Program-made: the position numbers and the translations under genes | Shown: in pieces, positions 9,001 to 37,283 of the stretch | Position numbering within the stretch: position 1 is the first letter of the stretch | How the letters are laid out: each line of letters starts with the position of its first letter | Source of the DNA: Auanema rhodensis | Taxonomy: Eukaryota > Animalia > Nematoda | Length of the DNA stretch: 64,000 nt | NCBI GenBank assembly: GCA_964057225.1 | Contig: OZ059896.1 | Span: forward strand, 10,726,001-10,790,000 | Direction: 5' to 3' | The notes under the pieces: model-generated | What the model was told of the DNA's origin: nothing | The model's database searches: none | What the model saw: only the letters and a program-made list of their open reading frames with translations

Positions 9001-12000
9001 AAGCATACAACTAATCATCATCTTGCTTCAGTTATTAAATTCACTCGCCCTGCTTATGTATTTTCACTACGAAGTGATTCTCCTCCTGGTACATACTTGG
9101 GATCAGCAAGATTGAACTGGAGTAAGGATGTTAAACTATCATTGGAAAGTGGAAAATACCTATCTATTGATTCTGATGGTCAAATCAAAACTTTGAATAC
9201 ATTCACAGATAGAAATATTCAAAAAATTGAAGATATTATTATTGCTACACATCAGGTATATTAAAATTATAAATTATATTTTAAGTTTTTTTTAAATTTG
9301 TAGGGTTCTCGCGTTGCTGAAGCTGCTCTCAATTTGCATTTGATTTTCACTCCAGGATCTACACCTATTAGTATGATTGACTCATCCACAGAAAATGTTG
9401 TAAGAACATCTGGATCTTCAGTTACTGCTAGAAAACCTACAACCAAGAGTGAAAACATTGAATCTGAGGCAGATAACTCAGAATTCCATTTCTCCAAAAA
9501 GGTTTATCAAGCTTTTGTAACCGAAGGAAAGTATTCAAACGGAATTAAATTGGCTTTGAAGCCAGAAGAGTTATCTACCAATTTCGTCGGACAAGTAACT
9601 TATTCTATCACCGACAAAACTGTATGTTTTACTAACATATACATATATTAAATTGAAATTTTCAGTCAATGCCATTTGTTTTAACACCTGAAGGTCAACT
9701 TGTCGTATTTGATGTCGATCGTGAAAAGCAAGATAACTATGTTATCAGCATTACTGTATATTATTCAATAGTATTCTGTTACTTATTGTTTTGTTTAGGC
9801 TAAGACAGGTGAAACTCCAGCAAGACAAGCTTTTGCTCAGATCAACGTAGTGGTATTAGACGTCAATGACAACTATCCTGAGTTTGAAAATCATCCAGAA
9901 AGTCTTGGAATATATCGTGACGCATCTGTTGGAAGCACTGTTTACCGTTTCCATGTATATTTTAATTTAATTTTGATTTTTAAAAGAAGGAAAATATAGG
10001 CTTTTGATCGTGATGACGACGCCAGTGGAACTGTTCAGTATGGAATAGATGGAGAGGATAACTACTTCAGCATTGATGCTATTGGTATACAATCTATTCG
10101 TTAAACGCCCAATAAAAGTCGTTTTCAGATGGCACAGTTATTGTTGGCAAATCCCTAGCTAATGCTCCAAGTCTATTATGGATTACTGTTGTAGCTCGTG
10201 ATCAAGGACGTCCAGCACTTCGAACCCATCACAAGGTAATATAAATATTTGAAGCTTTGAAAACTTAATTATTTTAATTTATAGGTCTCCGTTCGTATTT
10301 TTGATCCACATTATCCAGCTCCTACACTTCCTAAGACAACTGAAGTTTTGCGTGTCCCAGAAACAGCTGAAAATGGAACATTATTAACCACATTATTAGC
10401 TGGACCAAACATTATTCGCCGTGGATATGAACCTATAGAATATGATGTTGCTGATGATCAGAATGGTCTTTTCAAGGTATATTTATAATATATTTACATC
10501 TAATTACTAAATCTTTCAATTCAGATGCTCGACGGTGGACGTTTGATACTTTCTAGACCACCAAATTCAAATGAATTGGGAAAAATGTATCATCTGAATA
10601 TTACTGCTAAAAATTCCCTTGGAGTTGATAGCAAAGAAGTTACAGTCCAGATTGAAGGAGAAAAGGCAGCAACAGAAGCACCTACTTCCAGTTTAGCTAC
10701 TAAATCAAGCTCAACAACTGGAGGATGTTCCTTTGACAAACTTGTATATGAAGCTGAAATACCAGAAAATTACCGAGATCGTCATCGCTTAGCTACTGTG
10801 AAATCATCTAATTGTCCTCAGCTACTTTATGAGTTATCCGAACCTTCAGGTACTATAATCAATTTTTTTACAATTTGGTATTCGCTTTCTTTCAGATGCA
10901 TTCGAAATTGATGCTAAATCTGGAGATATATATGCAATCCGATCTCTTGATCGTGAAAGAAAATCTCTTCATCTATTAACTGTTAATTTGGTGGATGTCA
11001 ATAAGCGTTTAAAACGTGAACTTCCTGAAGTTGAAGGTATGAGAAAGTTTATTTTTTATAAATATTAATATTTACATATATAGATGCTAAAAATAGACTC
11101 TCTGCTGGACAAGCACTCATTGTTGTTCGTGTTTTGGATCAAAACGATAATGCTCCAATATTCGTTCATCTGTCCGACGAACGTTTCGTGGCTAACGTCA
11201 ATTGGCAAGCGAAGGCTCACTCCAGCGTGTTCAGACTACAAGCTAAAGATTTGGACGATTCTTCTGTACTTACATATGATATATCTGGACCATCAACCGA
11301 TCTATTCACTGTGAATCAAACAACTGGCTTAATCAGTTTGACTACGAGCATTGAAAACGATCCACGAACAAGCTTCCAGCTTACAGCCACTGTATCAGAT
11401 GGAGTTTTCAAGACCACAGCTCCTTTAGTTATTTTCAAGTTATCTCCCACATCCAATGTTATCCGTTTAACTAGTGAAATGCCAGCTCACAAGATAAAGG
11501 AATATCAAATTGAGAAAACACTGAATGAATTAACGGATAGTGATAGCAGAGTCCTAGGCAAGCAGATGTTCATTGACGAAAAAGGAAAACCTGATGAGCA
11601 AAAATCACATGTATTCGTCTACTCTGTTAATCGTGAAACCAAAGAGCCATATCGCCGAGAACAATTACTTGAGTGAGTTAAAGTTCTGAATTTCTTTCTT
11701 AAATTCATTATTTCAGTATGCTTGGTCCACATTCTTCATCACTTATGGCATCTCCAGCTAAGATATCGGAGGTGTCTTTGGTCGCTAATAATGAGCCAAT
11801 TCTTTCGGCTGTCGACATTCTTCTTCTTCTTCTAGCCCTTGTAGTAATAACTCTTCTTCTGCTTGCTTGCTGTTGGTTGGCCACTGTTTGTAAAAGGTAA
11901 ATCTATTTCAAATATTTTTAATAATCCTGATATACAGAAAACGATATGCTAGTTCATCGAAAACTGATCATGAATACATGGTAGATAGTGTTGGAGCTGG

Positions 12001-12315
12001 ACCCCGACCTTACGATGTAGAACAAATCAGTCGACACACAGCACAAACTGTTTTGGCCAGTCGAGCATTACCAGATCCTTATGAGATTAATCCAAGCTTT
12101 AATGACGGCACAGTTTGCACTAATAGAAGTAACAGTACTAAGGAATTTGCTAACAGTGTACGCGAACGACCATCATTATTGCAAAGTGCATTGGCGAAAC
12201 ACAAGGTTCTTAATCTGATTAATAATATTTGTTAATAATATATGTAATTCAGATTCATGACGGCGGATTATCAGTAACAGTTGATTATGTGGATTGCGCA
12301 AAAGATTCAAAATAG
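1..12315 (+). CDS. Large non-classical cadherin (5' end outside window): many EC repeats, Thr-rich inserts, membrane-adjacent domain, one TM, cytoplasmic tail; multi-exon
   Basis: Manual splicing gives a continuous frame with cadherin motifs (DENDNRPVF, EDLNDNSPRY, AFDLDSGTNG, LDREQ, DVNDNAP, DVNDNYPEF, LDQNDNAPIF). TM ILLLLLALVVITLLLLACCWL at ~11817-11880. Stop TAG at 12313-12315. Introns mostly ~45 nt, except 2144-4844. Confidence 0.93.
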
Positions 12316-12812: not shown

Positions 12813-13935
12813 TTATCCATTTTTATTAGATTTAATTTGGAGCTGAAATAAATAAATAAATAAATACAAAAAAAAATACTCTTACTCGAGGAGGTAGTTT
12901 TTTCATAATTCTCTTATAATAGACTTCCACTTTTTTGATATGTCCTGCCAATCGTGCACGATATTTTTCATTTACGCATAAAGACACATGATGACTTAAA
13001 TGACAAACACGGCAGGTTTTAGTACACACACCACTGTGTTTCAGCAAACAGCATGAGCATAGGTTCAACGTTGACACCATTTCTCGACGTTGATCAGATT
13101 CAGAGATTGCGCAGCAAAACTCAGGAGAATGGGATCCGTTCATTTTACAAAAAATGCAAATATCATTAATACGATTCCGTTTAATATCTTGATTAAAGAG
13201 TTTTACCGCTTCGTGCCACATAATAGTCTTCTGCGAATTTTGCAGAGTTTCCAGCAAATCACTTTCCGATGACGTACTCGAAAGAACATCCTGTACGGTA
13301 TTAGTCTCCGATTTATCCTTTATTAAAGATTCAGATGTGTTATTATTAGCATCTGAAGAGAAAAAATAATGCTCCGCAAAAGAGTGAATCATTGTCTTGT
13401 AGTCGGTATTTTTAGAACGTATCATACGGAAAACATCTGCAGCAGACGTAGTCAGGTGCATTTCAAGAATATTAAGCTTTAGTTCTTCCGAGAACTTTGA
13501 TTGTGAATCGACCTTGACCAAGAAATCTTGCCAGAATTTTAAGAACTCTTTACGATTGCCACAGAAAATATCTAGTTGTATAACACTAGAGTCAGAATCA
13601 ACAGCAGTTACAGACGTCCCATTTTCCATGGATTCAGAAGTGATATGACTGGAACAGACGGAATCTTTCACCAATGGCTCTTCTGAAATCCGCTTTTCTT
13701 CGTTTCTCAATTCGTTCCGTTTTTCCAACAGCAGTTTGAAAAAATCTCTCCTCAATTCATTTAATCGGATCATTTTCTCAGTTTCCACAAGTTTGTTTTT
13801 AATAGCATCTATGTCGTGTGTGAAGTCACATTTTCCATTCTGGATGTGGAATAAGTTCAATAAACCTTGAGAAAAAGACTGGGATACTGATTTTATGCTT
13901 TCTGCTACTCTATTGTCGTTATCAGGAGAAGGCAT
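12813..13935 (-). CDS. Stand-alone BEL/Pao retrotransposon Gag-like protein (coiled coil, DUF1759-like segment, three Cys/His knuckles); 359 aa if spliced
   Basis: LDIFCGNRKEFLKFWQDF...KLNILEMHL...DYKTMIHSFAEHY resembles the DUF1759 pattern. Knuckles CIFC-x5-H-x4-C, CSCCLLKHSGVC and CRVCHLSHHVSLC. Predicted intron 12885-12843 (gtaaga...tttcag) gives the C-terminus LQIKSNKNG*. Predicted 5'UTR intron 13981-13936. Confidence 0.75.
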
Positions 13936-14146
13936 CTAATATTAATGAAATAAAAAATAAATAAATAAACTTCAAACACACCGTTGTCAGCCCCCGTATG
14001 TACAATGAAAATCACCAATTAAATTTGATTTGAGCTATATATAAAAAAATAGTCTTACACAGAAAAATTGCCCGGTTACAAAACAATTTGAAACTAATAA
14101 TTTTTATTGAAGATCTATGGAGAACCAAAGTTTGGTATTAGTGTCA

Positions 14147-14219
14147 GCCCGGTTAGCTCAGTCGGTAGAGCACCAGACTCTTAATCTGGCTGTCGCGGGT
14201 TCGAGCCCCGCATCGGGCT
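14147..14219 (+). tRNA. tRNA-Lys(CTT)
   Basis: GCCCGGT TAGCTCAGTCGGTAGAGC A CCAGA CT CTT AA TCTGG ... GGTTCGAGCCCCGC ATCGGGC T forms a cloverleaf with A/B boxes and a downstream T5. Confidence 0.97.
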
Positions 14220-15052
14220 TCAAGTTTTTGCATTTTGTTATGTGTATTTTCATTACTTTTAATTAAAAAAAAACTTTTAGTTATTTGAAATTTATAAAAA
14301 TCTATTCACTTTTCAATCACATGGTAAAAGCGGTTAAGCTAATCAAGTTACAAAAACAACGAAAAAACTTAATTATGATGAAACAGAAAAAACAAGAACA
14401 GGCCAGCATAGTGTACTTGTTAATGTTGAAACGAACAGAAACAAATCAGAAGCCCTGAACCGTAAGCATTATGTATAAATATAAATATAAATATATTTCT
14501 ATGAACGCCTAAATAGTTATTCAATTTATATAAAAATAAGCTTAAGAGAAAGACGAAATTGTAGCTTTTAATATAAATCTTTGACATTCAAGTTTCCAGT
14601 AAGAGGTAAGGAATTTCTATTGCAAAAGAGAAAAAGTTATGCAGCTACTTTACTGAATTTGATTTTTGCAAGAAAAGAAAGTATTGTAAAAGGGGTCCGC
14701 TTTCAATATTTTGGAGGTTAAACGAATAATGGAGCCTATTAGATACACGTAGTTCACTTTCTGGTCTCATTAAGGGTGCTTGCGTATACATTACAAAAAA
14801 AGTTTAGTATATATTTAAAATAAGAGTAATGTTTTAGACTAATTGATAAAAAAAATATTGTTTTTGGAAAATGACTGAATCTAATTGACGAGCTAACATA
14901 TGGTAGGAAGTTACTACCAAATGACACCGAATGACATTCTCTGCGGAATTTGAGTGACCAAAAAAGGCAGTTATTGAATTTTTGTGAGGAAATGATTAAG
15001 TAAAACTGATTAAGATGTTAAAAAATAGATAAACATCATGTAAACATTAAAA

Positions 15053-18000
15053 TTATTTGAAAAATGAGAAAACTTTGGAGCCAGCTCCTTCTACAAGACT
15101 GGATACATTTGAAACAGCAGCTGTAGCATTTCCAAGTGAAGATGGAAAGACAGATGATGGAGTTGAGCCATTTCCTATAAGATATAATATTAATTTTAAT
15201 TAATAGAACATGTATATATATACCTTGATCTTGTAATGCTACATTCGTCTCTTCGAGTTGAAGTCGTTTGCTGATGGATTGATAAACTCGTCCGTTAAGA
15301 CGTTCTTCATCAATACCATGCAATTCAAAATCAGAATAAACTTTCTTAACAAATTAAATAATTTTTTATGAAATAAATAAAATAAAATGAAATTACCTTA
15401 ACAATAAAACTAAGAGATTGAAATTGATATACAGATAAAGATTGTTGTAATCGTTCAGTTAGCCAATCATTGATCATTTTCATTTGACTATCATACCATT
15501 TCTAAATTTTTATATAAAAATATGTAAAATATTTACTTTATTTTACCTCAAATAAACGATTTACCCAAATTTCATCTGTTACAATTTGTCTAAGCTGTTC
15601 TGTGCATCCTCTCATAAAAGTTACATACGAGTTACCGATGTGTCCAGTGGATTTTTGTTGAGAGACAGGAGTTTTCTTAAATATAATGTGATACAATAAA
15701 TTTCTAAATTTCAAATTTATATCACAATACGATAAAAATTTCATTATAATATTAGGTTGGAAAGAATGTTCTTGCGCGTTTCTGTTTCTGATATTTTTTG
15801 AATTATCTGGCCGCTAAATAAAAAATAAACAAATTTTCGAGTTTTACAAGATAAAATATATTATTTCTGGCTTATCCCCAAGAACATTCTTTCCAAACTA
15901 ATATGTATATATATATATACATATATATATATTTGTATATTATATAGTTAAGAACAACGTACCGTAGGTGGGCCACCAGCACCACTTCCAGTAATATTCA
16001 TTCCTTGTTCGCCAACAATCGTTTTAACTTTATTGAAAATTGATGTTGGTTTTGGCTTAAGATTTTCATATTTTAATATAAATAACATTTTATATTTAAC
16101 TTACAGCCATAGATAACAATGCTCCAATAGGATTTCCTTCATCATATCGAGCTAATTTTCCCAATACAAATTCAAGAACTCCAATCATTTTATCTTGAAT
16201 GCATGAATCCATATCTCTTAACATTGTATCCAAAGTTTCATCTAATTTTGAATGATATTTATGCTGAAAATTAAAAAAAAGATTAGTTGTTGATAAATGA
16301 TTAACATACATCAGATGATTCATTTGTTACACGACTGGCTCTAGCTTTACTACTGAAGATGACGTTGATCATAACACAAATTTCTGATGGAAGTATATAA
16401 TCTGTGGTTTTTCGTGCTCTTTGCATCCATAAATCAAATTGTTGATAAGTACTGAATAGAATACTAGTTTAAATTAATTATAAACATGATACAAACCTAT
16501 TAGCTACTCTTGTTATCATGTCAGAAGTTAAGTTTCTCATTCTAATATGTAGATATCTTCGAAATTCTTCTTCTGGCCAATTTAAATCCACTACAAATCC
16601 ATGAAGAGCATCAAGCTTCCAATATATATCTTCAGATGTAGCACATCCTTCCCTATTATAACCAAGATATAAATTAAAATTTTTTGAATACTATAACATA
16701 CTTTCTTTGTTCCCATTTTTCTTTCACAAATCCTTTTTCAATCGCTTGAGCTACAGCTTGTTCCATCAGATCACAGTACCTGCTAACTAAAGGTTGGAAC
16801 TGGCATGTTAACTTCTTATGAAAAGTTCCTCCTTTAAGATACTCTGAAAACAAATTATTTCTGAATTATAAAAAAGAAATTCTAAATATACGTTCGCTCA
16901 TTAAGAAATCATTAAGCATTTGAAAAAGTGGAAAGGAATCCCATGTATCAGGCGGTTGAACTTCTAAAGCGGCATCCAGATCAACGGAATATAATGACCA
17001 AAATATTTCCGAATGATCAGCTAACAAATCAGAAAACCATGCGAAAGCCTAAAGAAAACATAAATTTCTGTTGTTATATCATTAAATAATTTAATAAGCA
17101 GTTGGTTAAACACGAATGTGACTATATTGAGATTCTAATATTATTCTCACAAATCTCAATATATTCACGTTGTTGTGAGAGGTTAATACGCTAAAAGCTT
17201 CACTCGAACAAACTCTAACAAGTACATGTTAGAAATAACACTCAAATAATTAGTATAAAATTCATATTGTATTATAATATATAAAATATTATTAATAAAA
17301 AAACTAATATATATATATATATTATATTATAATGTATGTATACACATACATATGTATTTCCATATACATATAGTTTACAGTATAAAATCTAAAAATTAGC
17401 GCGTGTAGTAACAAACACGAAATACAAGAAGCTTTAGGACAAGAACCGAAATATAGAAGAATCGATAATATTCAGATAGTTAAGAAATATTAATCGAAAT
17501 CTTTTTCGGTTATAGACATAACAATTTAGAAACTACAAACACTACTCTAAGCCATATAATAGAAAATTTTGTTTAAAACGAATAAACAAAAATAAACAAA
17601 ATATTTCTATTATTAACTATATTTAAAAAAAAAAAAGAAAAATAAATAAAAATAGATGAAATGATTGATGTTCATTTGTCTTACCCCTCGTAGCTGCTAA
17701 AAATAAAGAAGAAATAAAAAAGAAGGAAAATATAATATAACATATAACTTGTATATATTGGGAAGGAAAAGATAAACATAAAATATAGGATATTAGAGGA
17801 GAAAAGATATATTTCGTGCAATTTGAATATATATATTTGAATTTTGTTTCATAAATTTGATATTCAAACATAAAAAAATACCTCTCCGTGATGTTCTTCG
17901 TTTTCTTTTAGCAAATCTATACAGAATTCTGTCACTCGAACCATATCCTCTATTCTTTGAATGGGCGTGATGTTTTCTCCCATTCTTTCTATAAAAAAAA

Positions 18001-21000
18001 TAATTTTTGTACCATTTTAATTGAAATTTATAATGTTATTACGTTCTATTTTAGCTTCATTACATATACGAGTATAATTAACTAGAGCTGCGTCTTCAAG
18101 GCATTTTCGAATAACTCCACGAACTTCTTCAGGTGGAACTGGTGATACAACATCTTTCATTAAAACCTCAAATTTTATTTATTTATATAAAGAAATATAA
18201 TTCATGAATGTATATTACTTACCCGTTCTAGTAATGACAAAGTACCTTTCAAAGCTCCTTCTGGACGACCAAAAGGGAAGCAATATCTGAATAGCATTGA
18301 AATAACTTTAAATTATAGAAAAACAAAAATTTTACCGAAAATTAGTTATCTGCTTTTCCAGTAAAACTCGTAAACGTTCCTTAATTTCTTGGAATTTCTC
18401 TTTTTCTTCTAATGTTACAGTTCCAACACCTTCTGGCTTATATGGTTCACTTGCACTTTAATAACAAAAATTTAAATTGAATTTACAATATTAGGGAAAT
18501 ACCTATGTTCTGCCCTATTACCATGTACATGACTTGCACAAAATGCAAAAGAATAATGTATTAGAGTTGGATCAATTAAATGTCCTTCATCTGCTTTATC
18601 TAATAATGCTCGAAGCAATGCTATATGACGATAGCATCCTCGAACCATGTATCTAGCGCAATATTCATCTAATACAAAAACTTGAGCAGGAGAGAACCAT
18701 CCCTTAAATTAAATTTTGAATAATATCAACTTGAACTAGGCTGAATTTCTGCTTGTAGCGAAGCTTGAATACATTTGCTTACCAGAGAACAGATAGGCTC
18801 TCCCAACCTATGAATCAAAACTTGTGTTTGAACATGTTCAAAAGAATGCTGTTGATTCAGAGACATTGGATCAGCCTAAGAAAATGATTAATTGAAAAAC
18901 AAAAAAAATTGAAAGAAACCTGAATTATTTCATCCATTCCATGCTTTGATGCTTTATCTTGAAAACCTTGAGCTTTAGGAGTAACTGTTGACTGTTTAGG
19001 TGGAACTGGCTTATATGCTTGACCAGTAGCACGATATAAAGCCTTGAATATATTAGAAATAAAAGAAATATACGAAGAAATATTTTACCTGAACCCACAT
19101 ATGACGTTCATTTTCATCATCAGTTGCTAATTTCAGTTCATCACCTTCTTTAATGGCAGTAAAAAAGAATTTACCACCATTCGAAGAAAGTTCTATGAAA
19201 ATTTAAAATTTACAAAGAAATATCAATTATTCAATTGTATACCTTGATCAGGCTCTGGCATATAATCTATTGTAAATCCATCAAGTTGTTGAAATTCTGT
19301 TGGCTCTGATTTCTTTTCTCGGAACGAACATATGGCAAAAGTATATTGTGAAACTTGAACTAAGCAGAAAAATCGTCTTTTCCATTTTCTCCATACTGAT
19401 CGACCCATACAATAGCAATAACCACAATATTTTAAGTTAGGTGGCTTATCAACTCTAAAAAATTAATATAATTACTAATTATATATGTAATATATGTGAT
19501 TTAACCTTATAGCAATTCGTATTTTCAAACTTTGATCTTGACTATTCTTAGGTATTGTCATAGTATACCATTCAGGCGATCGAGAACAGTTTGGAGTTGG
19601 TTGAATGATAACCTATAAATAATAATATTAATTAATAAATAATAATAATAGAATATAAAAATTACTTTTCCTAGTTCTTTATCTTCAAATGATACAATAC
19701 TCTTAACTTCACTATATAGCTTGACTTTAACCACAGGAAGAACATTTTTTGTAGAAAAATCTCCTTGTGTATCCCAGCTATAAGAATAAATATAATTTTA
19801 TTTTTATTTATTCTAACTTACGATGGCTTAGATGCTTCAGCATGATCTGTTTGAAGTTTATGTCCATCAACTTCCATTGTACAGTACACAATACGATTTG
19901 GTTGTAATGACTTTAATCCTTTAACTTCCATCACAACAACCTTTAATTATAAATAAATTATATTATTATATAAATAATTTTATAAATTACTTCCATATTA
20001 AGTGTAAGACAAACATCTGACTTCGTTAATATTACTTCTTGATCTTCACTTTCTGTTTTATTCAAAGATCCAGAACTTGTCCGACGTTTCAAACTGAAAA
20101 TAAATAAATTGAATTCATATTATATATTTTATTATTTTGTTAATTTTTCAAATCATATAAGAAGCTTTAAATCATTTTGTTTCTCGCACTAAATAAGCTA
20201 TTAGATCATCTGGCAATAGACAAAAAAAAAGTTCTGTAACTATTATTGTTTGAACGCTAATTAGAATTTGAAATTTTTTTACATTCAATTATAAAAAAAG
20301 CGACAAATAGCGGCAACACTCCTTTTATGCTCAAACTTAGATATCTAAATCTTACTTCAACACTTAAAAACTGATTATTAAACCTAATAATTAACTTTTT
20401 TTTTTAATTTAAAAAAGTTGTAAATATTATACAAATAAAACAAAACAAAGAGGCATCATTCCAAGAAGGGCATATTTTTCAGAAATTTATTTCTAATCTA
20501 TAAGGTGTGAGAAGGTTAGTTCATTCCAGAAAATATTTGTCAAAACTACTTTCTTTTCTTTTTTTTTGGTTTTTTAACTATATAGTAATAAGATCAGGCA
20601 AACGGATGCTGAAATATATACACATGTATACTATATCATATATATATGTATAAAAATATAATTTTTATACATATTTATATAATTATACATATATACATAT
20701 ACATATACATATATATATGAATATAAAAAAAAAGATAACATAAAGCAGTTAGCCTACAGCACTCAATAACCTAATCTTTTAGATAAATACATATATGTAT
20801 ATTTATATCTTTATATACATATATACATATATATATATATATATTAAGATGAGGCCGAATTTAAAACTTTATCAATTTAAAGTTTTAAATTTTGGTTTTG
20901 ATTTGAAAGCATCATCCATGTTTATCAGAAGCAGCAGCCAAGAGCAGCCACGAGCAAGTTTGAAAGCAAACCTGTTAAATAGCGATAAGTCCTCTATGCT

Positions 21001-24000
21001 TCGAGATCTAGAAAAAGAAAAGAACAAACTACTTTAATATAATTAAATTGAAAAGGAAAAGTAAAAATTGAAAAGATTGTTGTTTTATTTTGTTGAAAAT
21101 AGTGCGAAAGTGTGTGATGAAATCAGGTGAAACTGCTGTGAACTAGCTGTGTATTGTGCAGTGATTATAGTCGATGATTCCCATTTAGACAGATCTTATA
21201 ACTCAGCATGCACTCTTCTATATAGCTATGTGATATTTCGTGATTATTTCCCCCTATATGTATATAGATAGATTGAAAAAAATAATAATTTTAGTAATTT
21301 GTTAAAATAGGGAAGAAATAGTCGAAAAGAATTGTGATGCAAGTTACATGCTATAAGCTGTGTCATTAAAATATCATCAACGTTTCAGCAGTATGTTGAA
21401 GAAAATATATCAAAAAATAGATTCTATTTGGAATTTTTACAAGTGAATAGTGTTTTTTAATGTTTTTTCTTGTTATTTTTAAAAATTCGTCAAATAAAAC
21501 AAAAGAAATAATTAGTATAAATGGTTTGAGTTCAGTCAGTTGACGAATTTTATGTGATTCTGGAGATAGAGACCAGAATAGGAAAAGAAAGATGTGAATT
21601 AGAAATGTTAAAAATCATTCCAAAGGACAGTTAAAGAAGACAAAACAAACATGTATATTTGTCTTTAATAGGATAGAAACACAGACAATAAATGAATGAA
21701 TTTGAAAGAAAAATAAAAGAATAGATAGGAGAAGTAGAAGAATCAGATAAATATCCGATTAACATACCGTTTGTTCTTTGTGTTGTTACTGAAAAAAATG
21801 GAAAAACGTTAGAAGAAAAGTTATTATTTGGATTAAATGAAGTTAATAACTGTATATTTGAATAGTTAAATAAAGATATTTCCTTCCAGTTAGGGAAGAT
21901 AAAGAGAAGAATACTATTTTCAGCTGAAGTATAGTTCAGCAAAAATATAATTTTAATCCTCTTTACTTGTATTTATAAGAATAGTAATTATAAAGAAAAT
22001 ATAATATAAAAGATCATACCGAGATTTATCTTTCCGTTTTCCACCTCCTGTCCCACGTGGAGCCACTGGCACTGATTCGAGATTGGAAATGAGCATTGAA
22101 ACAGATTGCCTAACTTCATCCATATATAACGTTTCCATATCTTTTACAACAAATTTTGGCATATGTCTACGCATCTTGATAAGAAATAATATTATTATTT
22201 TTCTTTTTTTGAAATATTATATTACTTTGACAATATCTTTTAAACATTCTTCTCGTAATCCAACTTCACGTCTAATTGTTGCAGCTTGTTCATCAGGATT
22301 GTCAAGCTATATAAAAATATATAATTCTAAGTTTTTAACAGCATTTCAAACCTGTAGAGCATTAAAGATAATTTGATGTTCAAATTTCTTAACAGCTAAT
22401 ATTTGTTGAAACATATCATACATTTGTTCTTTGCTGAGAACCATATCGCTTTGTGCTTCCTTTACTTGATTTCGACCTCGTAATCTTAAAAAATTAAATT
22501 TTTAAATTTAAAATTGAAAAATATATGTTCTACCTTCCTTTTTGATTATCATCATCACCCTTGCATATGGCATCATATTTTGCTAACCATGCTGATAATA
22601 CCATATCTTTTGATAATCCTTCGATTTCAGGTAATGAACGTATTCGTTTTTCAATATTTAAACGAAAAACCTATAACATTATCAAATTAAATATAATTAT
22701 ATTTTAGAAAATGATTATATATAATACCTCTCGAAAATCATGCATTGAAAAACCTCCAGCATTAACAACTTTTTGCACACGTTCAGACTTAAGAAATACT
22801 TCATGATAGCTTTGTATAGCTTTGATTAATGCTTCATCTGCTGGTATATTTGTTTCACCTTTTAAAAAGCTTGCAAATCTAAAATAAATCCATGTTTAAT
22901 CCAATATAATACTCTCTAACCTGTCTTTTAATCGTGCTAATTCTGGTTTTGTAACCTTCATCTGTCTTCTAGCCATATCTGTTGGTAATTTAGCATTGAA
23001 GTGATAAGCTATACAACGAGCAACAAAAACATAAAGTTGAAGATTTTGTTTATGATCTTCTTCTTCTTTCTCAGCTCTAAAAATATTTTTATTTTTCACA
23101 TTTTATTTAAGGAAATGAGTACAAAATACTCACCGTATCCTTTCTTGTTCTTCTTTGGTAAGTGAAGTTTCTTCATTGGCTTGTAATATCAAAGCTTCAT
23201 CCTCATCAGCTTCATTATCTGATATATCTTGAGATGATTGAAATTGTGGCCGTGATGCAGATGATGTATTCCGAATCTGAAAACAAACAAAAAAAATGTT
23301 AAAAGTCATATCCATTAATTCATTAGCAATTATAATAAACATTTCCAACAACATTTCAAATTTCAATTAACTATAATATATGGTTTAAAAAAGTAGAAAA
23401 GGAATGTTTTCATGAAACTAATGAAGTTGATTGTAGAATTTTCTTATTTTTTTTATAATTTTCTTTGTAATATTCATTTCTTCTTTCATTTATGTATGCA
23501 TTAGTATTCTTCAATGTGTTGATTCCCTTATTTGAACATCATTGTCTATTTTCATTAACTCTTCAAGTTTTACAGCTTAGTTAATTTTCTCAGTTCGTAA
23601 ATGAATGAAAAGATAGTATTATTTTCAAAAAAGGAAAGAAAAGAAAAGAAAAAGAATTGTGAACTAGTTTAATTAAAGTTCATTTAAATGATAGAACTTA
23701 CAGATCGTGCTGGTGTTTGACTATGTGAGGAACCTTTTCGTCGATAGGTGCTACTACTGTTATTTCTTTTCAATGAGTTTGTCTGAAATTTAATTAGTTT
23801 TAATGGAAAATTAGAAATGATTGGACCTGTGAAACAGAATCTGAAGGGGCTGGTGATGTAGAATGTGGAGGAGAAGTAGTACATTGATTAGTACCAGTTA
23901 GAAGTTTTTTCTTGTAACAATAATTAACTTGAAGCTGAAAATATATAATAATTTATGAAACGGAATATAAATATTTTTCATTTTTATTATTAGCTTCATT

Positions 24001-25118
24001 AACTTTTCCTATTTTCTTCATGAATTGCCTTGCTTTTCTATAAACATATGATATTCTGAGTTCTAGAACACATAGTAATGGGACCATCATTTGTTCCTAC
24101 TCTATGTATATCAAGAATCTAAAGACCATGTGGACCAAACATTTTAAAGCTGATGTGCTGAAGACTCGATAGACATAAGCAAAAATGGAAGGAAAAGCCT
24201 CAAGCCGTCAATTGGCCCGAAGAAATCGGATACTTCGCCCCTGGGCAGTCGAAAAATGCTGTGTCGGATTGTGCATGATGAATAGCCAGAATAAGAAGAT
24301 GAAGAAACAGAAGAAGAAAAGGAAAAATATGGACATTTGGGTGAGATGTGAGATGAAACTGAAGGAGACGAAGTTTGTCAAACAACCAAATGAACTTCTA
24401 AGCTTTTCCTGAGAGAAAGATTAAAACTATAACAAAATATTTTATGAATGAAAAGAAATATTATTATATATTTCAAAATTAAATATATTATATAAAAATA
24501 AATAAATATACTTGTATAAATATATATAAATATACATATATGTATTTATATAAATATATGAATAAAAAATGAAATGATGTAAATAGAAATAAAAGAAATA
24601 GAACAGATAATAAATGGGAAACCCTGCTCCCACCATCTCAACTTTCAATTTTCCAACTGTTCATTGTATCTTATTTTCTTATTACGTTTCACAAGGAATA
24701 AAATTAGTTATAACATCATTAAAAACAATTAATTTTATAAATTATAAATATAAAAAGAAAAATATTTTAAAGGAAAACTATTAATTTACAACTAAAAGCT
24801 TCTTACAGCTCTATAAATCTTAAATGAAAGCTTTTCAAATAAGTTAATATGGTTATACACTGAACCATAAATTGCTTGAGGTTAATATTATGTGGAAAAA
24901 CTGAACAACCATAGTTAGGCTAGCAGAATTTAGCATTCATAGCTTTCAACTATGTACATTAGGTTCAAAGAAAAATGCCGTACAGAAAACAATACTAAAT
25001 TTTTAAAAATTCAAATAAAATGATTTTTAAATTCATTGAAAAAGGATATATTCTAACTTACTTCATCTTCATTCACAAAATCATCATCATCATCTTCACT
25101 ACTACTGGCACCTAACAT
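15053..25118 (-). CDS. unc-31: CAPS / calcium-dependent secretion activator (dense-core vesicle priming); multi-exon
   Basis: Starts [14 protein letters not shown] at 25118, behind tttag. Motifs [41 protein letters not shown] domain [42 protein letters not shown]. Ends [13 protein letters not shown] at 15053. Confidence 0.96.
15752..15901. mobile_element. 150-bp mariner-type MITE in an unc-31 intron
   Basis: TIRs ttaggttggaaagaatgttcttg / caagaacattctttccaaactaa (23 bp, 1 mismatch), flanked by TA on both sides (15750-51, 15902-03). No coding capacity. Confidence 0.85.
17685..17696 (-). other. Predicted 12-nt microexon of unc-31 (QLRG)
   Basis: ttttag|CAGCTACGAGGG|gtaag, phase 0, between exons ending EHHGE and starting AFAWF. 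Flanking introns are unusually long. Confidence 0.7.
20972..21007 (-). other. Predicted 36-nt cassette exon of unc-31 (adds [12 protein letters not shown])
   Basis: ttttctag|ATCTCGAAGC...TTTAACAG|gtttgc is a symmetric phase-2 exon inside a ~1.9-kb intron. The frame is kept with or without it. Confidence 0.75.
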
Positions 25119-27561
25119 GCTAAAATACAAATAAATGAGTATTAAATAATAATGAATAACATATAATATAGAAAATTATATGAAATATATAAAAAAATAT
25201 GTTATTATTATAAAGAAAAGCATTGGAACTTAAAGAGAAAACGACAGAAGTTAGAAGGAGGAAGGGTGTAGATAAACATTGAAAAAAGTCCTAATAGTTG
25301 AGATCAACGAAGGCTCTAATGAGAAGATGAAAGGCAAAAAAGGGTGTGCATGGATGTGGAAAATAGGAAAAAAGCTAAAAACATGGAGAAAAGATTAGAA
25401 AGGCAAGTTTTTGAATGAATGCTTCAACGACAAATATCAAATTCAAAAATAAGGAACAGGCATGTACATGTCATTTGGAAACTAATGCTTTGTTGCTATG
25501 TTTTAAGAAAAATTAGAACGATATTTGCACGAAAATGATAATGGAGAATGACAAAAGTAATTTAAGATAAAATGGAAAAAAGAACGAATCAGATAGAAAC
25601 AAAGAAGAAGATAAAGACATAATGATGAGCATAAATAGATATTAGGTTGTAAGAGTTGGTGGGGGAGGGTAAGAGAAGTGAAAACCACCCAAGAGGTACT
25701 TCAAGAATTTCCTGCACAGCTTGTTTCCTTCTTTGGTGGATGCTGTTATGAGGATGGATAAAGGAGAAACAGAGAGAGAAACAGAGAGAGAGAGAGAGAG
25801 AGATAGAGAGAGACAGAGAGAGAGAGAGGGAACAAGGGAGAGAGAATAAGAAAATGCATAAGATGAGAAGCAATATAATAGTTATAGTGAAATAAGGAAG
25901 TGCTATAAACAAAATTTGTCATTTGAAGCGAAATTGTAAAAAAAAATAAAACAGTATCACTATAAAAGCATTATTTTGAAGATGCTTTCATCTAAAACTT
26001 AAAGAATAAAAAATGAAAAGATACTAGATAATGGATATGAAGAGAAAAATGAATTAAGATAAAGAGAGAAAAACAGAGGGAACGAAAGAAAAAGAGAGAA
26101 AAGCTTAAAAAGGATTGTGGAATCGGTGTATGAGAAACATAAGAGAATTTAACAGCATTGATGAATAAGAGAGCAAGAAAACACAGTAGAGGAAAAGAAA
26201 ATGAGACTGAGTGAAAGACAGAAATAGTATGAGAGACTGAAAAAGGAAAAGAGAGGTAGAGATATAGAGAGTTGTGGAGTGGCCAGCTGCAAATGACATA
26301 TTGACAATGAAAGCCAGAGAGAAGGAAACATGAACTGGTTAACCAGTCATACAGAGAAAACGAGAAAGTATATTTCTTCTACAATTCCTCTTGAGCCTTT
26401 GTTGCTCTAGAACAACGAAACCACTTTCTTTCTTAAAGTTATTAGAGGACAGATCATTTATATTAATTTTAAAAATAATAATTAAGAAATATTATAAATA
26501 AATAAATATAATTAATTTTAAAAAAATTCTATAATACAAATTAAAAATAAAATAAAATATTAATTTATATATACATATTCGATACAGTCATATATAAATA
26601 TATGTAAATATTTGAATTAATTGGATTTCCAAGAGATCTATCGGTGAAATTAAAATTTGCTCAAATGTATTAAGATATGAATACGCTTTAAAATTATAAT
26701 TAAATTTTGAAATTTAAAACTTAAAAAAGGAAAAAGGTTTTTGATTGAGAAATACTTTTGAAAAAATACTTAAATGAGAAAGGGAGAGAGAAAGAGAGAA
26801 AGAGAGAGAGAGATAAGGGGGGAGGTTGGAGAAGGTTAGAGATATTTAAAAAATGAAATAGTAAAGTCTAGAATTATATATATTAGATAGAGAGAGAGAG
26901 AGAAAGGGGGAGATTAAAGAGAAACGGTTCAATACCTTGTTCCGTTAATAAATGACTTAAATGGCAGTTTGAGAAAGAGGGAATGAAATATGATGTCTTT
27001 ACGTGAAACGGGCTTCACAGTCAACTAATAGTTGATGTTAAACAGCTAAAAGAATTTGAAATTGTTATAAAATCAGTAATATTATGGAATTGGTTTTTCT
27101 TGTTAAAAAAAAAGAATATTTATATAATTATACATATCTATATACATATATATGGATAGATAGAGATATATAGGTGTGCGATTTTCAAATATATTTTTTG
27201 AAAGATGAAAAAAATATTCAGATATGCATATACATATGTATAAGTACATGAATATACATGGATTTACGAAAAAAAAGAGAATAAATAGAAAAATGTACTT
27301 TAATAAGAAATAATTATTTAGTTTCAAATTATTATAATCATTTATAATATTAAATATAATTGATAAATTACATATATATATATATATGTATATATGTATA
27401 TGAAATATAATAGAATTAATTATAAAAAGCAAAATACGAAAAAGAAGAGAATTTTATTGGAAATAAATATTTGAATAACAAATATAAAGAATCACTATCT
27501 TATATGATAATAATGATATTATCATTAAGCTTAATGATATTGAAAAAGTTCAAAAATAGTT

Positions 27562-27564
<3 letters not shown>

Positions 27565-27611
<47 letters not shown>

Positions 27612-27673
27612 GAGAGAGAGAGAAACAGAGAGAGAGAGAGAAACAGAGAGAGAGAGAAACAGAGAGAGAGAGA
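27565..27673. repeat. (GA)n microsatellite with periodic aaac interruptions
   Basis: Seen directly. Similar tracts at ~25770-25830, ~30915-30945 and ~34703-34792. Confidence 0.95.
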
Positions 27674-28806
27674 ATCAGAGGTCATGAAGAGATCAGGAAG
27701 AGGAAAGATTAAGAAAGATAAGGTGAAAAAAAGAGGAACAACCTAACGAGAAGATAGAACAAGATAAAAAAGCTCATGATAGTCAAAGCAAATCGGTGTT
27801 GAGCCTCCTGAATACTAAACATCTTGGTGGCAATTTGAAGTAGATTGTTGATTTGTCATACTATAGAAAGAGAGAAAATGACTTAAGAGGACGATAATAC
27901 GAAAAATGTTCCGCAAATGTGACAACTATTCATAGAAATACAATTAAAAAGTTTTAAAACAATAGAAAATATTAAAAAAAAAACTTAAAAGTTTGTTCAA
28001 AAAATTATAATGATTTGAATTATAGTTTAAGGTTTTAAAGCTTTTAAAGCTTTTAAATCTTTAAAAGAAAATATTATAATCTACTGTATTATGACAACAA
28101 ATATTCGCAACTTTCAGCAAAGCTAAAGAATCAAAATTTTTAAAAAATATGGAACTCGACTGAGCAGTAAGAATACATATATACATATATTGTGCTCGGC
28201 ATTCCATTGCTGATATTTGTCCCAGGAGGCCGTGCAAGTTGGACCATTTTTGACCTCTTCACGTCTTTTAGTTTTTAAAAATCGTTTTGTTTAACTTCAT
28301 TTTATTCTTTATTCCAATAACTATCATCAATTATATTGAAGTTTTAAAGAAGTAATCTTCTAATATACATATTGATGAATTGTTTTTTAAGGAAAAAAGG
28401 TTAAAAGGATTGAAAATTAGTAAGAAAATTGATAATGTAAGACATGGATAGGATAAGAGATATAGAGGAATACATGTAGCTTATACATACATCATATGTA
28501 AGCATGTATGTATACATGTATGTATGTAGATAAAGTTAGTGATAAAGTAATAATATACATATTCATATACATATATCCATCCATCTATTTAACTTTTACA
28601 ATTGTTAAGAACAAAAAAACTTGAGTAGTCATCGATTATTTATTAAGAATGTTTAATCGTGTCGTCTTGTTGGCATCAGAAGTAGCTGTGAAGAGTGGTA
28701 GGAGTAGTGATGATGCTTGTTGTAGAAATAGGAGATAAAAAGAGAAAAGAGGAAAACGACGAAGAAAAAGAAGAAGAGGAAGAGCAGAGGGTAACAGATG
28801 AGCTAG

Positions 28807-28890
28807 GAAGAAGAAGAAGAAGAAGAAGAAGGAGAAGAAGAAGAAGAAGAAGAAGAAGACGAAGAAGAAGGAGGAGGAGGAGGAGAAGAA
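28807..28890. repeat. (GAA/GGA)n trinucleotide microsatellite
   Basis: Seen directly. It is the source of the spurious poly-Arg ORF 28695-28913. Confidence 0.95.
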
Positions 28891-31800
28891 TGTTGGATGT
28901 CCAACACGGATGATGCTATCTGAAAGTCTAACGGAATCTATTATGGATTATAACCGTTTATTAGTGGAAATGAGAAAAAGATGTAAGAAAAGTGTAGTAT
29001 AAATGATTCCATTAGAAGAGATCCTTTTTGAATCTTCTCAAATATAAAATGATGTTCTTAAATAATATTATGATATTTATATATTTAATGTTAAGAAACT
29101 GATGTTACATACATACATACATATATATAGATAGATAGACATATGAATGTATATCTATGCTCTAAATGGGAAATAAGATGTTCAATACAATTTCTTTCAT
29201 CAAATTTGCAGATTTTCTACTTTAAATTCAAGTATATATTCTTCTAAATTGAACTATTCTCATTAGTATCGATATCTATTTCGATTTTTAAAATTCAATC
29301 AAGATATCTGTAAGATTTTGCAACTTAACATAGTTGAAGACAAGGAAATAGAAGAATAAAATAAAAACTAAATATATATATACTATATGTATATAGTTAG
29401 ATGGATAAGCATGTATATAAAATATAATAAATGAAATGATTTATGAAGTATATTATCAAAGTATTTTCCACACAAATCTCAAAATCTTGTTGTCGATAAC
29501 GATTGTTTAAATGACTTTTTGAATTACTATATTCTTTATAAATTCTTTTCTAAAATATAATAATTTTTAAAAATATTCGAAAGTTAATATCAGAATTTTC
29601 GGAAAGTTCATAAAGATAGTTGCACTTGAAGAAAATAGGCAAAAATAGAACGGTTACTTTAAACAAGATTCAACTTGAGAGAAAACTTTTAGTTTTCCCA
29701 TCTGAATACCATCATAGTAGATTTAGATGTTAAAGTTCTTTCAAGTTTTAAAAACAGAGAAGAATAAAACAACTAAATCTTAATTCTTAAAGAATAATAT
29801 ATGAGTTCTTGAATTCAAATATATTAGAAATGAATAAGATATTTGATTAATTTTAAAATATAAAAAAATTTTTTTTCAGTACATTTACAATGCTTGCAAC
29901 TTCAAGCTTTATTCAGTCTTATAAAGACCGTAGATTGAGACAATTTGAGTGCAAAAATTGAATGAATATGAACATTTCGGGAGAAGCGAGAAGGACATTG
30001 AGATTAAAAATCTATGTCAATCAGCTTTTTCGTCGTTTTTTTCACCTTTTTCACTATTCTAAATACTGAAATAAATCATTTGAAACAATGAGAATTATTG
30101 AGATTTAATTCTTTTTTTCTCTTTTTTTTGAAGAAAAAACATCAAAATAGTTTTAAAAATTAAGTTTTATATAGTATATATATGTGTACATGTTGATTAA
30201 GAATAATCCAGTTCAACAGGAAATTAAAGAAGTTTTTCTTGAAAATGATGAGAAAGATAGCCATACTCTTCGTAAATCATGAAAGATTATGCGATATACT
30301 GAACCAAAGTATTAAGCATAATAGGTCATGTACTTTAAACAAGATCAAACTTAAAACAATTTTCTCCGAAAAGGAAGTAAGCGATGTTGTTGCATCTCAA
30401 AGAACTTTATCATGTATTTCAAGAAATATTTAAATGATTCTATTGTAATATAATATAATAAAAGTTATATTATTATATGATGAATAGGAAAAAAAAATAA
30501 AATTTAAAAAGTATATCATCGAAATAAGAGAAAAAGAATATAAAATATAGAATATATATATCCATATATACTAGATCTATGCATATATACATATACTACA
30601 TACATACATAGATACATATGTACATATATATCTGTATGATTCACTATAAAAAAATGGAATATTAGAAAAAAAAAGAGAGAGAATATGGCATTTTTATTAT
30701 ATGTTTATAAATAGCCTCATAGGATGTATGATCTGATCTGAATGAAAATTGGAAAAAAGGCAAACGTAAGCATCTTTGCAACCAGTAAACAAACATAAAT
30801 ATCAGCACAAATATCCCAAAAATTGAAATGAGAAAGAGAGTGTAAGAGAATGAGATATCCGATAAGAGAAAAATGAAAATATCTAGAGAATAGAGAAAAA
30901 ATGGTGCGACAAGACAGAGAGAGAGGGAGAGAGAGAGAGAGAATGAGAGATAAAGGAAATGTGAAGAGAGATTAAACGTTTAGAGAAGAAGAGTTCGCTG
31001 ATGCTCCGAGTAATCGAGAGCGAGGAAGAACGAAGAACGAACTGAAATTCAAACAAAACAGGAAAATTAGAAGAAGTTCTTGAATCAAACGAATCATGCT
31101 AACCATATTAGTTTTAAAATTAAAGGACATATTCAGTATTGCCAAAGCTTGTAAAGAGGTAAAATCGATTGTAATAAGGTCATCTGAATGAATTGAAAAA
31201 GAAAAAGACGACGGTGGCAAAGAAGGAGAAGAAGAGAGAAGAAGAAGAAGAAGAAGAAGCAGCAAACGAAGAAAGAGCATCTAGATAGATCTATGCCTCT
31301 AGCTCATCAGATTATCTTGCTATCACATATACATATGTATGTATGTACATATTGATTAAAATCTTTTTTTTGTTTTGTTTTTAACTATATTTTATAAATA
31401 ATTAACTATTATTTATTGTTTCATATATATATATTTCTCATCATTATTGATTATATAAAAATAAAAAGTTTTGCATAATAATAATTTTCTTTTCAATGCA
31501 AATAAATGCATTAAAATAAGAATATTTTATTATAAATATATATATCTTTTGATTTATTTGTTATAAATCATTTAGTATAACTAACAAAGAAAAATGAAAT
31601 TCAAATCTTTTTTTTTTTTTTTTTTAAGATTTCATTCTTAATATGTCATTATAATTATCTTTGTTATCAACTACTGAATCATTCTGTCATCTGTTATTCA
31701 AGCCCTGCTCCTTCTCTTCTGTCTTTCCTCCCATTCCTCCCTCCCCTATTTAATTTTATTTTCGTTTTCTTTTTAATTTTCCTCCATGCTTTGCCTTCCC

Positions 31801-33409
31801 CATCCATGCTTTCTTCAATGGCTTCCCGCAGCCACATATCTATACTATATGTATGTGTATACATATAGTATAGATATACATTATATATGTATCTCTCTAT
31901 TTATATATTTATACATATATATATATATATATATAGTTAGCATATAAAGAAATTCTTGACCACATAGTTAAAAGAACAAAAAGATGTTTTTTTAGAAAAA
32001 AAGACTTAAAGATCAACAAAATTTTTTGATTTTTTTTTATATGAAACACAAATGAATATGCAGCCTATTATTTCAGAAAAAAACGAGAAAAAGGGAGAAC
32101 GAGAACAAGGTTCTTCTATGTAAATAAATAAACAAAAAATAAGATTCTGTTCATAATCACATTGCTATGACTAATAAAGAAAAATATTTAAGTTAGAGAA
32201 TATGGAAAGGTGTGTCGTTGTCAAGGAAATTATTAGCACAATATTACTAAACAAAAATTATTGAAATTAAAATGAAGATTTTATTATAATTATTATATTT
32301 AATATAATAAATATAATAATAAAAAATAATTTATATTCTATATATACTATATGTAAATTAGGAAAAAGAACATTAATAGACATTTGGTTTGAAGAAAATG
32401 AAGCAAACAATGCCAATATGATGCTATATAACTAGAATATTCTGGTAATGAATTTTTTAATTCACGTATTTATTTCAAAAAAACATCTTGTTTTATTTTT
32501 TTTTATCGTCATATATAATATTAAATCAATATGTATATTATATTAACTATATGTAGTAAAAAGAGAATACAAATTAGTATAAATACTTCTATTTTATTGA
32601 CTTTGTAGTCTTTTTCACTTGAAATTTCAAACAAAAAAAGTTTATCCAATACTTCATAAAACAAACTTTTTGAACTAATTTTTCCAATTAGAATGTCGTA
32701 AAGAAGGGCATTCAGAATAACTTGGAGAAAATTTTTATTCTGAATACCATACTAGATAAAGCTGTTTATTATACTAAAAATTGGAACAGAAAAATTCAAT
32801 TAAAACGTAAAGATTTTTTTCTTTTCGGAGGAATCTCAAAAATTAAATAAAATGGTCAATAACTCAAAACAGAAAGAGTTTGGAGAATGCTTTTCGTAAA
32901 GTCAAAGAATAAAATGAAATTTCTAAAAAAATTGAACAAATTATATTAATAAGAAAGAAATAAAAGAAAATATAATATATACTATAGGTAGTATATATAC
33001 ATATGTGTATATGCTAGAACCTATATATTTTCTGTTACATTGATTAAGAAATATGGTTATAACAAGAGAAGTACGTATAGATGTTCATGCTAAGCCCAGG
33101 GGGCATGTTATGTGGGCCAAACTGATAGAAAACACAGAGGATTTAAAGCTGCTTTAATACTACATTTCCATGAAACTCGCTTTCCCGTTTCGTCTTTGCC
33201 TTCAATATCTGATATATATTTTTTTTTTGATTGAACGAAGACTAATATGCTAAAGGAAGTAATTTTAGACAATTAGATTTTTTTGACTTTTGACTGCTAG
33301 AATTGGATTTCACATGTTATAAACTTAAAACAATAAATAGAAATTTAAGTAGAATATGTTTGTTGGTTTCCTATTTTTGTTTTTTTTAACCAAATACCAA
33401 TTATAATTA

Positions 33410-33442
<33 letters not shown>

Positions 33443-36400: not shown

Positions 36401-36581
36401 AAAATACTCATTTATCTTTTTCCCAAAATCTCAAGTAGTATCTAGATTAATAATCTCCCTGAAGCCAAAATAGAAATCGGATAAAGTTGAGAAAGGATAA
36501 GACTTTACACATTGTACTATTAATCACTTCATATCAAAAATGTTTATTTTAAATTTGCAAAAAATGACTTCCTTATTTATC

Positions 36582-36663
36582 GCACTGATGTCCGAGTGGT
36601 TAAGGAGTTTGACTCGAAATCAAATGGGCTTTGCCCGCGTAGGTTCGAATCCTGCTCAGTGCG
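36582..36663 (+). tRNA. tRNA-Ser(CGA)
   Basis: GCACTGA/TCAGTGC acceptor stem, TTTGA CT CGA AA TCAAA anticodon arm, long variable arm GGGCTTTGCCC, GGTTCGAATCC; 82 nt. Confidence 0.96.
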
Positions 36664-37283
36664 AAAATTTTACTAAATTTGGAATACATTTATATTAACT
36701 ATAACAGTTGTTTTTCTAGTAAATAACGATTAATTCTTAAAGAATGAATGAATATTGCTATTTATAAAAAAAAAAGTATGTATGAGTCTGAAAAAGTATT
36801 GAAAAGAAACTGGGTACAAATGAGAAAATAGAAGGAATGACCAGACGTTTAATTAGTCTGTTCCCTATAGCGTAAGAAATGATGTTGCTAGCTGATTGGT
36901 TCACCGACTATAATGTATATTAGGCATAGAGGGATAGAGAGAGTAAAAGACGAAAAAGAAGAAAAGTAAGGAGCAGAGAAAATTTAAAAGCAAGAAATAT
37001 ACTAAGATCATTACGAATGCACGAAAATATATTTTCAAATAAATATAATGAGAGAGGGAAAAATAAAAATCACGTAAATTCTTTTTTTTTGTTGTTATTT
37101 ATATATTTTATGTTACTTATACATTTAAATGATACATAATATTTAATAGAAACAATAAATCCATATATGTGTATATAGCATAATTAAAGAAATTATATTT
37201 AACTCATCGATACATGGTAATATTCGTCATACTTGTATAAATAATTTAAAGAACTAACTTTAAAAATAGTAAAAGAAGTATTT

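Follow-up and report, generated by a model that had tools for sequence, protein, structure and literature searches.

The stretch of DNA analysed here, a window of 64,000 nt from the nematode Auanema rhodensis (contig OZ059896.1, positions 10,726,001 to 10,790,000; GC 29.2%), carries on its (-) strand, between a cadherin gene and the gene for CAPS/unc-31, a long reading frame which encodes a protein related to the Gag of BEL/Pao long terminal repeat (LTR) retrotransposons. All coordinates are positions in the window and the amino acids (aa) of the frame are numbered from its ATG at 13935 (-). An earlier note on this DNA had described an uninterrupted exon of 350 codons and proposed that it is a gag captured as a cellular gene; the exon (12886..13935 (-)) indeed contains no stop and no frameshift. 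When a candidate 3' intron is retained, the frame becomes an ATG-started open reading frame (ORF) of 367 codons (12832..13935 (-)), the longest one in the window, where the runner-up has 180 aa. The chance of 367 stop-free codons at 29.2% GC is about 3.5e-14 per start, therefore the frame is not a chance product. The features of the locus are as follows:

12813..13935 (-): complete coding region of the gag-derived gene under the spliced model, start codon to stop; left unspliced, it would stop at 12832
12886..13935 (-): exon 1, 350 codons without stop or frameshift, the only ORF of more than 180 aa in the window
13606..13935 (-): N-terminal region, aa 1-110, predicted as two long helices and then disordered, matching no family by itself
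13309..13566 (-): capsid-like segment, aa 124-209, DUF1759 profile positions 1-86 of 148
13360..13575 (-): four-helix lobe, aa 121-192, confidently modelled by AlphaFold2
13162..13359 (-): low-complexity linker, aa 193-258, modelled with low confidence, in the position of the second DUF1759 half of the relatives
12976..13158 (-): the three Cys/His knuckles, aa 260-320, the third one containing an HH doublet; ligand columns invariant or nearly so in 25 relatives
12886..12975 (-): basic helical tail, aa 321-350, by composition and model
12843..12885 (-): candidate 3' intron, 43 nt, phase 0, GTAAG...TTTCAG
12813..12842 (-): candidate exon 2, nine codons and a stop (12815..12813), with AATAAA at 12827..12822
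13936..13981 (-): candidate 5' intron, 46 nt, abutting the ATG, with GT..AG ends
14035..14043 (-): TATA-like motif, roughly 100 nt ahead of the ATG
14146..14221 (+): tRNA-Lys(CTT), head-to-head with the gag-derived gene
11086..12235 (+): last cadherin exons, convergent with the gag-derived gene
15039..15353 (-): most 3' recognisable CAPS/unc-31 exon, upstream of the gag-derived gene and on the same strand

Domain content and origin of the encoded protein

The protein consists, in this order, of a helical N-terminus, the first half of a DUF1759 domain, a low-complexity linker, three Cys/His knuckles and a basic tail. The knuckles, which had been read from the sequence as three in tandem at aa 260-320, are found as motifs at aa 260-275, 293-304 and 308-320 with the spacings CX2CX5HX4C, CX2CX3HX3C and CX2CX3HHX3C, the HH doublet lying at 315-316. 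All twelve proposed zinc ligands are kept, and in the alignment with 25 relatives 11 of the 12 ligand columns are either invariant (C293, C296, H300, C304, C308 and C311) or at least 90% conserved (C260, C263, H269, C274 and C320). A triple Cys-His box and an HH doublet are hallmarks of Pao/BEL Gag according to Copeland et al. (PMC554778). The DUF1759-like segment was likewise recovered: in the whole protein Pfam matches DUF1759 (PF03564) at aa 124-209 (E 3.6e-5, 24.2 bits), and when aa 115-209 are scanned alone the score rises to 26.9 bits, which is above the Pfam cut-off of 25.4, borderline, and covers profile positions 1-86 of 148. No Pfam family was matched by the N-terminal part alone or by the knuckle part alone. 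The short basic tail is borne out by nine K/R against one D/E in aa 326-350, and S, T, N, D and E make up a fraction of 0.49 of the linker (aa 210-258). The N-terminal coiled coil suggested earlier is putative: long helices are predicted (aa 4-32 and 39-84 in the AlphaFold2 model), and a coiled-coil PDB chain gave a weak compositional match to the N-terminal region (E 0.25).

An exhaustive HMMER search of 1.84 billion representative proteins, with E-values accepted up to 0.001, gave 30 matches; the strongest has an E-value of 1.1e-7 (47.9 bits, approximately 30% identity), and none lies at or below 1e-10. All 30 matches fall on the capsid-like segment or on the knuckle region, most of them in two stretches. 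The relatives found, among them proteins of Ptychodera flava, Mytilus edulis and the nematode Panagrolaimus superbus, all belong to the BEL/Pao Gag/Gag-Pol group and are all distant. DUF1759 is present in each of the ten relatives scanned, and in the longer ones it is joined by DUF1758 or an aspartyl protease, RVT_1, Peptidase_A17, rve (integrase) and DUF5641, the domain set of BEL/Pao elements; several database relatives are gag-sized (350-470 aa). When the alignment profile was compared with PDB, the knuckle region matched a chain named “Gag polyprotein” (6t61, E 3e-6, source element unstated) and, weakly, several nucleocapsid chains, and a weak match to dArc1 was also obtained (E 0.045). 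A PDB sequence search with the single protein gave nothing significant, a word search with the 367-aa ORF gave zero matches, the ORF itself included, and an exact look-up of the ORF found no record of it.

The DUF1759 matches, the relatives confined to BEL/Pao and the triple Cys-His box with its HH doublet together show that the protein derives from the gag of a BEL/Pao (Belpaoviridae-type) LTR retrotransposon. Within the BEL/Pao Gag family it is divergent and truncated, and it is not an intact element. With BEL/Pao Gag it shares the N-terminal half of DUF1759, the three knuckles, their conserved ligands and the HH doublet, all in the same order, but it is without the second DUF1759 half, and its best similarity does not exceed the 47.9 bits and roughly 30% identity given above. 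Unlike BEL/Pao Gag-Pol, the frame ends about 30 residues past the third knuckle, with no protease, reverse transcriptase, RNase H or integrase downstream, no LTRs and no primer binding site (PBS) that matches either tRNA of the window. Retroviral nucleocapsid proteins with CCHC knuckles resemble it in the profile match of the knuckle region to 6t61 and in the weak matches to nucleocapsid chains; they differ from it in having one or two knuckles and not three, and the knuckles of the protein have non-canonical spacings and no Pfam zinc-knuckle match.

The capsid-like region and the rest of the element

The earlier note had suspected that the C-terminal half of the capsid is missing and that particle formation is therefore doubtful, and several comparisons agree with this. 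A complete DUF1759 (positions 1 to 137-147) is present in seven of the ten scanned relatives and an eighth reaches position 122, whereas the match in our protein ends at position 86 of 148, and the Pfam scan found no counterpart of positions 87-148. From the start of the domain to the first knuckle cysteine there are 136 aa, compared with 192-225 in 18 relatives, i.e. the capsid-like region is some 55-90 residues shorter, and a low-complexity stretch rich in Ser, Thr, Asn and acidic residues stands there instead. The shortening left the reading frame intact. Structure prediction with AlphaFold2 was unusable without an alignment (pLDDT 39.7) and reached a mean pLDDT of 76 with an alignment of 26 rows (25 relatives). 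In this model four helices at aa 121-192 (pLDDT 94-97) and the knuckle region (85-97) are well modelled, and aa 197-260 are not (45-59). A Foldseek comparison with PDB gave as top matches, at weak E-values, almost exclusively capsid lobes from retroelements or from domesticated genes descended from them, among them PNMA2, dArc1/dArc2, the N-lobe of human Arc (TM 0.62, target-normalised), HIV-1 CA-CTD and Ty1 CA-CTD/Drt2. Each of these matches spans about 67-87 columns, which corresponds to one lobe, and a comparison with the BFVD viral models yielded only long-helix noise. With one confidently modelled lobe and fold matches to single lobes, the protein therefore probably has one capsid lobe and not two. 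The Gag proteins known to form capsids (retroviral CA, Arc) use two lobes. Because of the single predicted lobe, closed capsids of the Arc/PNMA2 kind are unlikely.

Remains of the rest of the element were searched for in the whole window. All HMMER relatives, including two full polyproteins of about 1730-1740 aa, were used as tblastn queries; they recovered the gag-derived ORF with E-values down to 2e-11, and outside the ORF no pol remnant or second gag copy was found in the 64 kb with an E-value better than 0.5. Repeat searches for an LTR pair gave AT-rich chance pairs only, and the best direct match between the two flanks was no better than in shuffled sequences, 82 out of 100 shuffles reaching or exceeding the observed score. 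The best PBS match was 6 of 12 nt, both to tRNA-Lys and to the second tRNA of the window; these two were the tRNAs compared and also the only hits of Rfam in the whole window. The space to the neighbouring genes is about 210 nt upstream and 500-580 nt downstream of the gag-derived gene. Compared with a complete element, gag is open although once internally shortened, and pol and both LTRs are gone. The frame thus stands alone in the window, without pol or LTRs and with no PBS matching the two tRNAs compared, which is in accordance with what had been noticed from the sequence.

Candidate introns and neighbouring genes

The candidate 3' intron (GTAAG...TTTCAG, 43 nt, phase 0) lies directly after codon 350; if it is not removed, the frame continues for 17 hydrophobic codons through a T-rich tract. 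It has the best splice consensus in the window, and the strict pattern GTAAG-N28-50-TTTCAG occurs on both window strands just once, at this position, with approximately one occurrence per window expected by chance. Three introns of the cadherin gene next door, read from the sequence, are 47, 44 and 41 nt long (the 47-nt one ends at 11083), so that both the 43-nt and the 46-nt GT..AG candidates are host-sized. The 46-nt candidate in front of the ATG may just as well mark where an outron ends at a trans-splice acceptor. The host-type introns claimed earlier are borne out with respect to their ends and sizes, and they are candidates by sequence. The TATA-like stretch near 14040 was found as a run at 14043..14035. 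A scan for bacterial promoters and terminators, irrelevant to a eukaryote, gave fewer sites than shuffled sequences.

The neighbours are those named in the earlier note. Exons coding for cadherin domains extend on the (+) strand up to 12235, tRNA-Lys(CTT) lies 210 nt from the gag-derived ATG, and exons of CAPS/unc-31, with the C2_CAPS, PH and MUN regions identified by comparison, occupy the (-) strand between about 23.4 and 15.04 kb; the coding sequences of cadherin and CAPS are 2.8 kb apart. We considered an operon with CAPS and rejected it, as about 1.1 kb and a tRNA gene on the opposite strand lie between the two genes. Past the apparent last exon of the cadherin gene there is a further GT..AG candidate of 46 nt (approximately 12207-12252 (+)), after which 12253-12315 would make an alternative C-terminus; with this end at 12315 the convergent gap to the gag-derived gene would be about 500 nt. 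The CAPS/unc-31 exons can be traced over about 8 kb (approximately 15039-23366 (-)) and are separated by introns that range from tiny to kilobase-sized. Inside this gene a 26-nt inverted repeat (15749-15774 and 15879-15904, 96% complementary, arms 104 nt apart) lies beside an (AT)n array at 15901-15946. Elsewhere in the window there is a second tRNA gene, tRNA-Ser(CGA), at 36581-36664 (+), and long CT/GA low-complexity tracts (approximately 24000-35300 and 50100-50530) produce Ser-Leu runs in several frames. Convincing exons are very scarce in the second half of the window. Insertion upstream of tRNA genes is known for some LTR retrotransposons of other superfamilies, and a preference of this kind may bear on the position of the gag-derived gene beside tRNA-Lys.

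Maintained gene or remnant

From the survival of the ORF and the uneven conservation of its parts we can reasonably infer domestication, i.e. that a BEL/Pao gag whose element was otherwise lost persists as a stand-alone host gene, and we hold this with evenly divided confidence. Substitutions that create a stop make up 152 of the 3150 possible in the frame (4.8%), and for an unconstrained frame the probability of remaining open is approximately exp(-51 d), or about 0.08 once divergence has reached 5%, with indels not yet taken into account; at least 4 kb of the element were removed without trace while the frame stayed open. The identity of the protein to its relatives is as high as that among the relatives themselves in the knuckles (39% vs 38%), is lower in the N-lobe (26% vs 38%), and the second capsid half is unrecognisable in this comparison. 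The GC content of the ORF (37%) is close to that of host exons (38%) and above that of the flanks (27%), which are already of ordinary intergenic composition, and the codon use of the ORF correlates with that of host exons (r 0.65) almost as well as host exons do among themselves (r 0.70). This composition fits a coding sequence that has long been resident, and also a resident element. The host-sized 3' intron candidate, the AATAAA and the TATA-like run add signals that resemble those of a gene. Taken together, the indirect arguments from ORF survival, uneven conservation and composition favour maintenance. Of the capture proposed earlier, the gag origin, the solitude of the frame and its intactness stand as results, and the capture itself is a reading of them.

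Several observations weigh against domestication. The DUF1759 score of the whole protein, 24.2 bits, falls slightly below the Pfam cut-off, and the Foldseek E-values, obtained with a query of several parts, are 0.23 or worse. The N-lobe has diverged beyond the spread of the relatives, which could reflect relaxed constraint, and the relatives were chosen by their similarity to the query, which flatters the comparison of the knuckles. A resident element would show the same codon use and GC content. Furthermore, no orthologue or close paralogue of the protein was found among the 1.84 billion representatives, where the best match is the one of 47.9 bits. In the six contigs which bear CAPS (L004-L009), just one, L007, extends past the CAPS 3' end, and in this single and fairly distant contig there is no gag-like ORF or tRNA beyond it. 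L007:1-13276 (Logan SRR19201377, GC 41%) carries a compact CAPS gene, with exons 48-78% identical to those of the window, followed by a convergent gene for an RPN1/RPN2-like proteasome subunit. This contig shows only that the arrangement is not ancient. The absence of an orthologue carries little weight, because a conserved CAPS exon (18475-18708 (-)) also has nothing above 85% identity among 5.8 billion clusters, in which the source species and its near kin are absent; its closest matches (82-85% identical) are short JGI metagenome contigs (L005 and L006), one of them from a root sample and with a GC content of 27%. An exon of the cadherin gene matched no protein, and among metagenome contigs it matched only cadherin repeats of 28-31% identity in L001-L003, which are unrelated.

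The same observations can be read as signs of a young and decaying remnant, that is, of a fairly recent BEL/Pao insertion beside the tRNA gene, with LTRs and pol removed by a few large deletions and with a gag frame open only for lack of time and without host function. We regard this main rival as possible and somewhat doubtful. Such a remnant would have no orthologue, as was found among the representatives, its capsid-like domain could well be 55-90 residues short of that in the 18 relatives and its N-lobe more diverged than theirs, and the splice and promoter signals would be nothing but short motifs in AT-rich DNA, chance alone predicting about one strict intron pattern per window. DNA is lost rapidly from compact genomes, and a fast loss of the remainder would be in accordance with it. 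It would however require that the two LTRs and no less than 3-4 kb of pol vanished without trace and that meanwhile 1050 nt remained free of stops and frameshifts, although 4.8% of substitutions create a stop. Against it there are also the preserved frame of the shortened capsid region, the twelve proposed knuckle ligands, all kept, with 11 columns invariant or nearly so in 25 relatives, and flanks which already have an ordinary intergenic composition.

Genes with DUF1759 are numerous and expanded in some nematodes (PMC7846577), and one such gene is the only Y-specific gene common to two filarial species (PMC7181701); neither set contains a detectable close relative of the gag-derived protein. 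These expansions (PMC7846577; PMC7181701) and the gag-sized database relatives of 350-470 aa are compatible with a gag-only family, non-autonomous or multi-copy, moved in trans by BEL/Pao elements or arisen as retrocopies of a gag message, with ends that cannot be recognised in the window. This is quite improbable, given that the 64 kb contain neither terminal repeats nor a second copy, that no PBS matches either of their two tRNAs, and that no close relative was found in any collection searched. In addition, introns are not expected to persist through repeated passage via spliced RNA, and the candidate intron in the coding region would hardly have survived it. Similarly improbable is a host gene whose product still assembles into capsid-like particles and transfers RNA from cell to cell in the manner of Arc and PNMA2: the modelled lobe resembles the capsid lobes of Arc, dArc1 and PNMA2, the family profile touches dArc1 weakly (E 0.045) and the knuckles are intact, but there is one lobe where the Gag proteins known to form capsids have two, nothing in the protein corresponds to DUF1759 positions 87-148, the distance to the first knuckle is 136 aa where relatives have 192-225, and the region in between is of low complexity and poorly modelled.

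If the gag is domesticated, its history could have been as follows. The gag of a BEL/Pao element would have lost the rest of the element and persisted as a host gene, retaining the N-terminal helices, a single capsid lobe, the complete triple-knuckle nucleocapsid module and a basic helix. The product would bind nucleic acid via the knuckles and the basic tail and would not assemble into closed particles; nucleic-acid binding is the most probable activity because the triple knuckle with its basic tail is the best-kept part, judging by the function of such knuckles in the Gag of retroviruses and retrotransposons. The retained lobe, together with the N-terminal helices, could also associate with the Gag of related elements, and a role as a decoy against related BEL/Pao Gag is conceivable, on the model of the partial-Gag restriction factors Ty1 p22 and Drt2. 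Maintenance by selection, splicing, expression, nucleic-acid binding and the decoy role are all properties that we infer.

Co-opted gag genes of animals such as Arc, dArc1, PNMA, RTL/SIRH and SCAN are similar in being stand-alone gag-derived frames among host genes, and Arc and PNMA2 additionally have a capsid-lobe fold that resembles the modelled lobe. They differ in that they derive from Ty3/Gypsy (Metaviridae) elements, in that most of them keep two capsid lobes, and in that they are documented by orthologues, expression and selection. Restriction factors that are truncated Gag proteins, such as Ty1 p22 and the endogenised Drt2, are likewise partial Gag proteins in a host genome, and Ty1 CA-CTD/Drt2 is among the fold matches; these however consist of the C-terminal capsid domain, and our protein has the predicted first lobe and the knuckles. 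Mouse Fv1 and sheep enJS56A1 are further restriction factors of the truncated-Gag type.

The co-option of gag is a known kind of event, but BEL/Pao as its source superfamily is undocumented for animals in the eukaryote-wide survey of such genes, in which all seven animal cases derive from Ty3/Gypsy, as do all well-documented animal gag co-options, and the single Bel-Pao case is fungal (PMC8321522). That the gene described here is the first animal host gene from a BEL/Pao gag, with one capsid lobe and a triple knuckle, with host introns, selected in a nematode lineage and acting as a decoy or as a new RNA-binding protein, is a far-reaching combination which we consider unlikely. If the frame is only a remnant, it is an ordinary fossil and worth a repeat annotation. 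If it is truly maintained, the third major superfamily of LTR retrotransposons would also supply host genes to animals, and it would do so in an unusual form, with nucleocapsid knuckles and one capsid lobe only.

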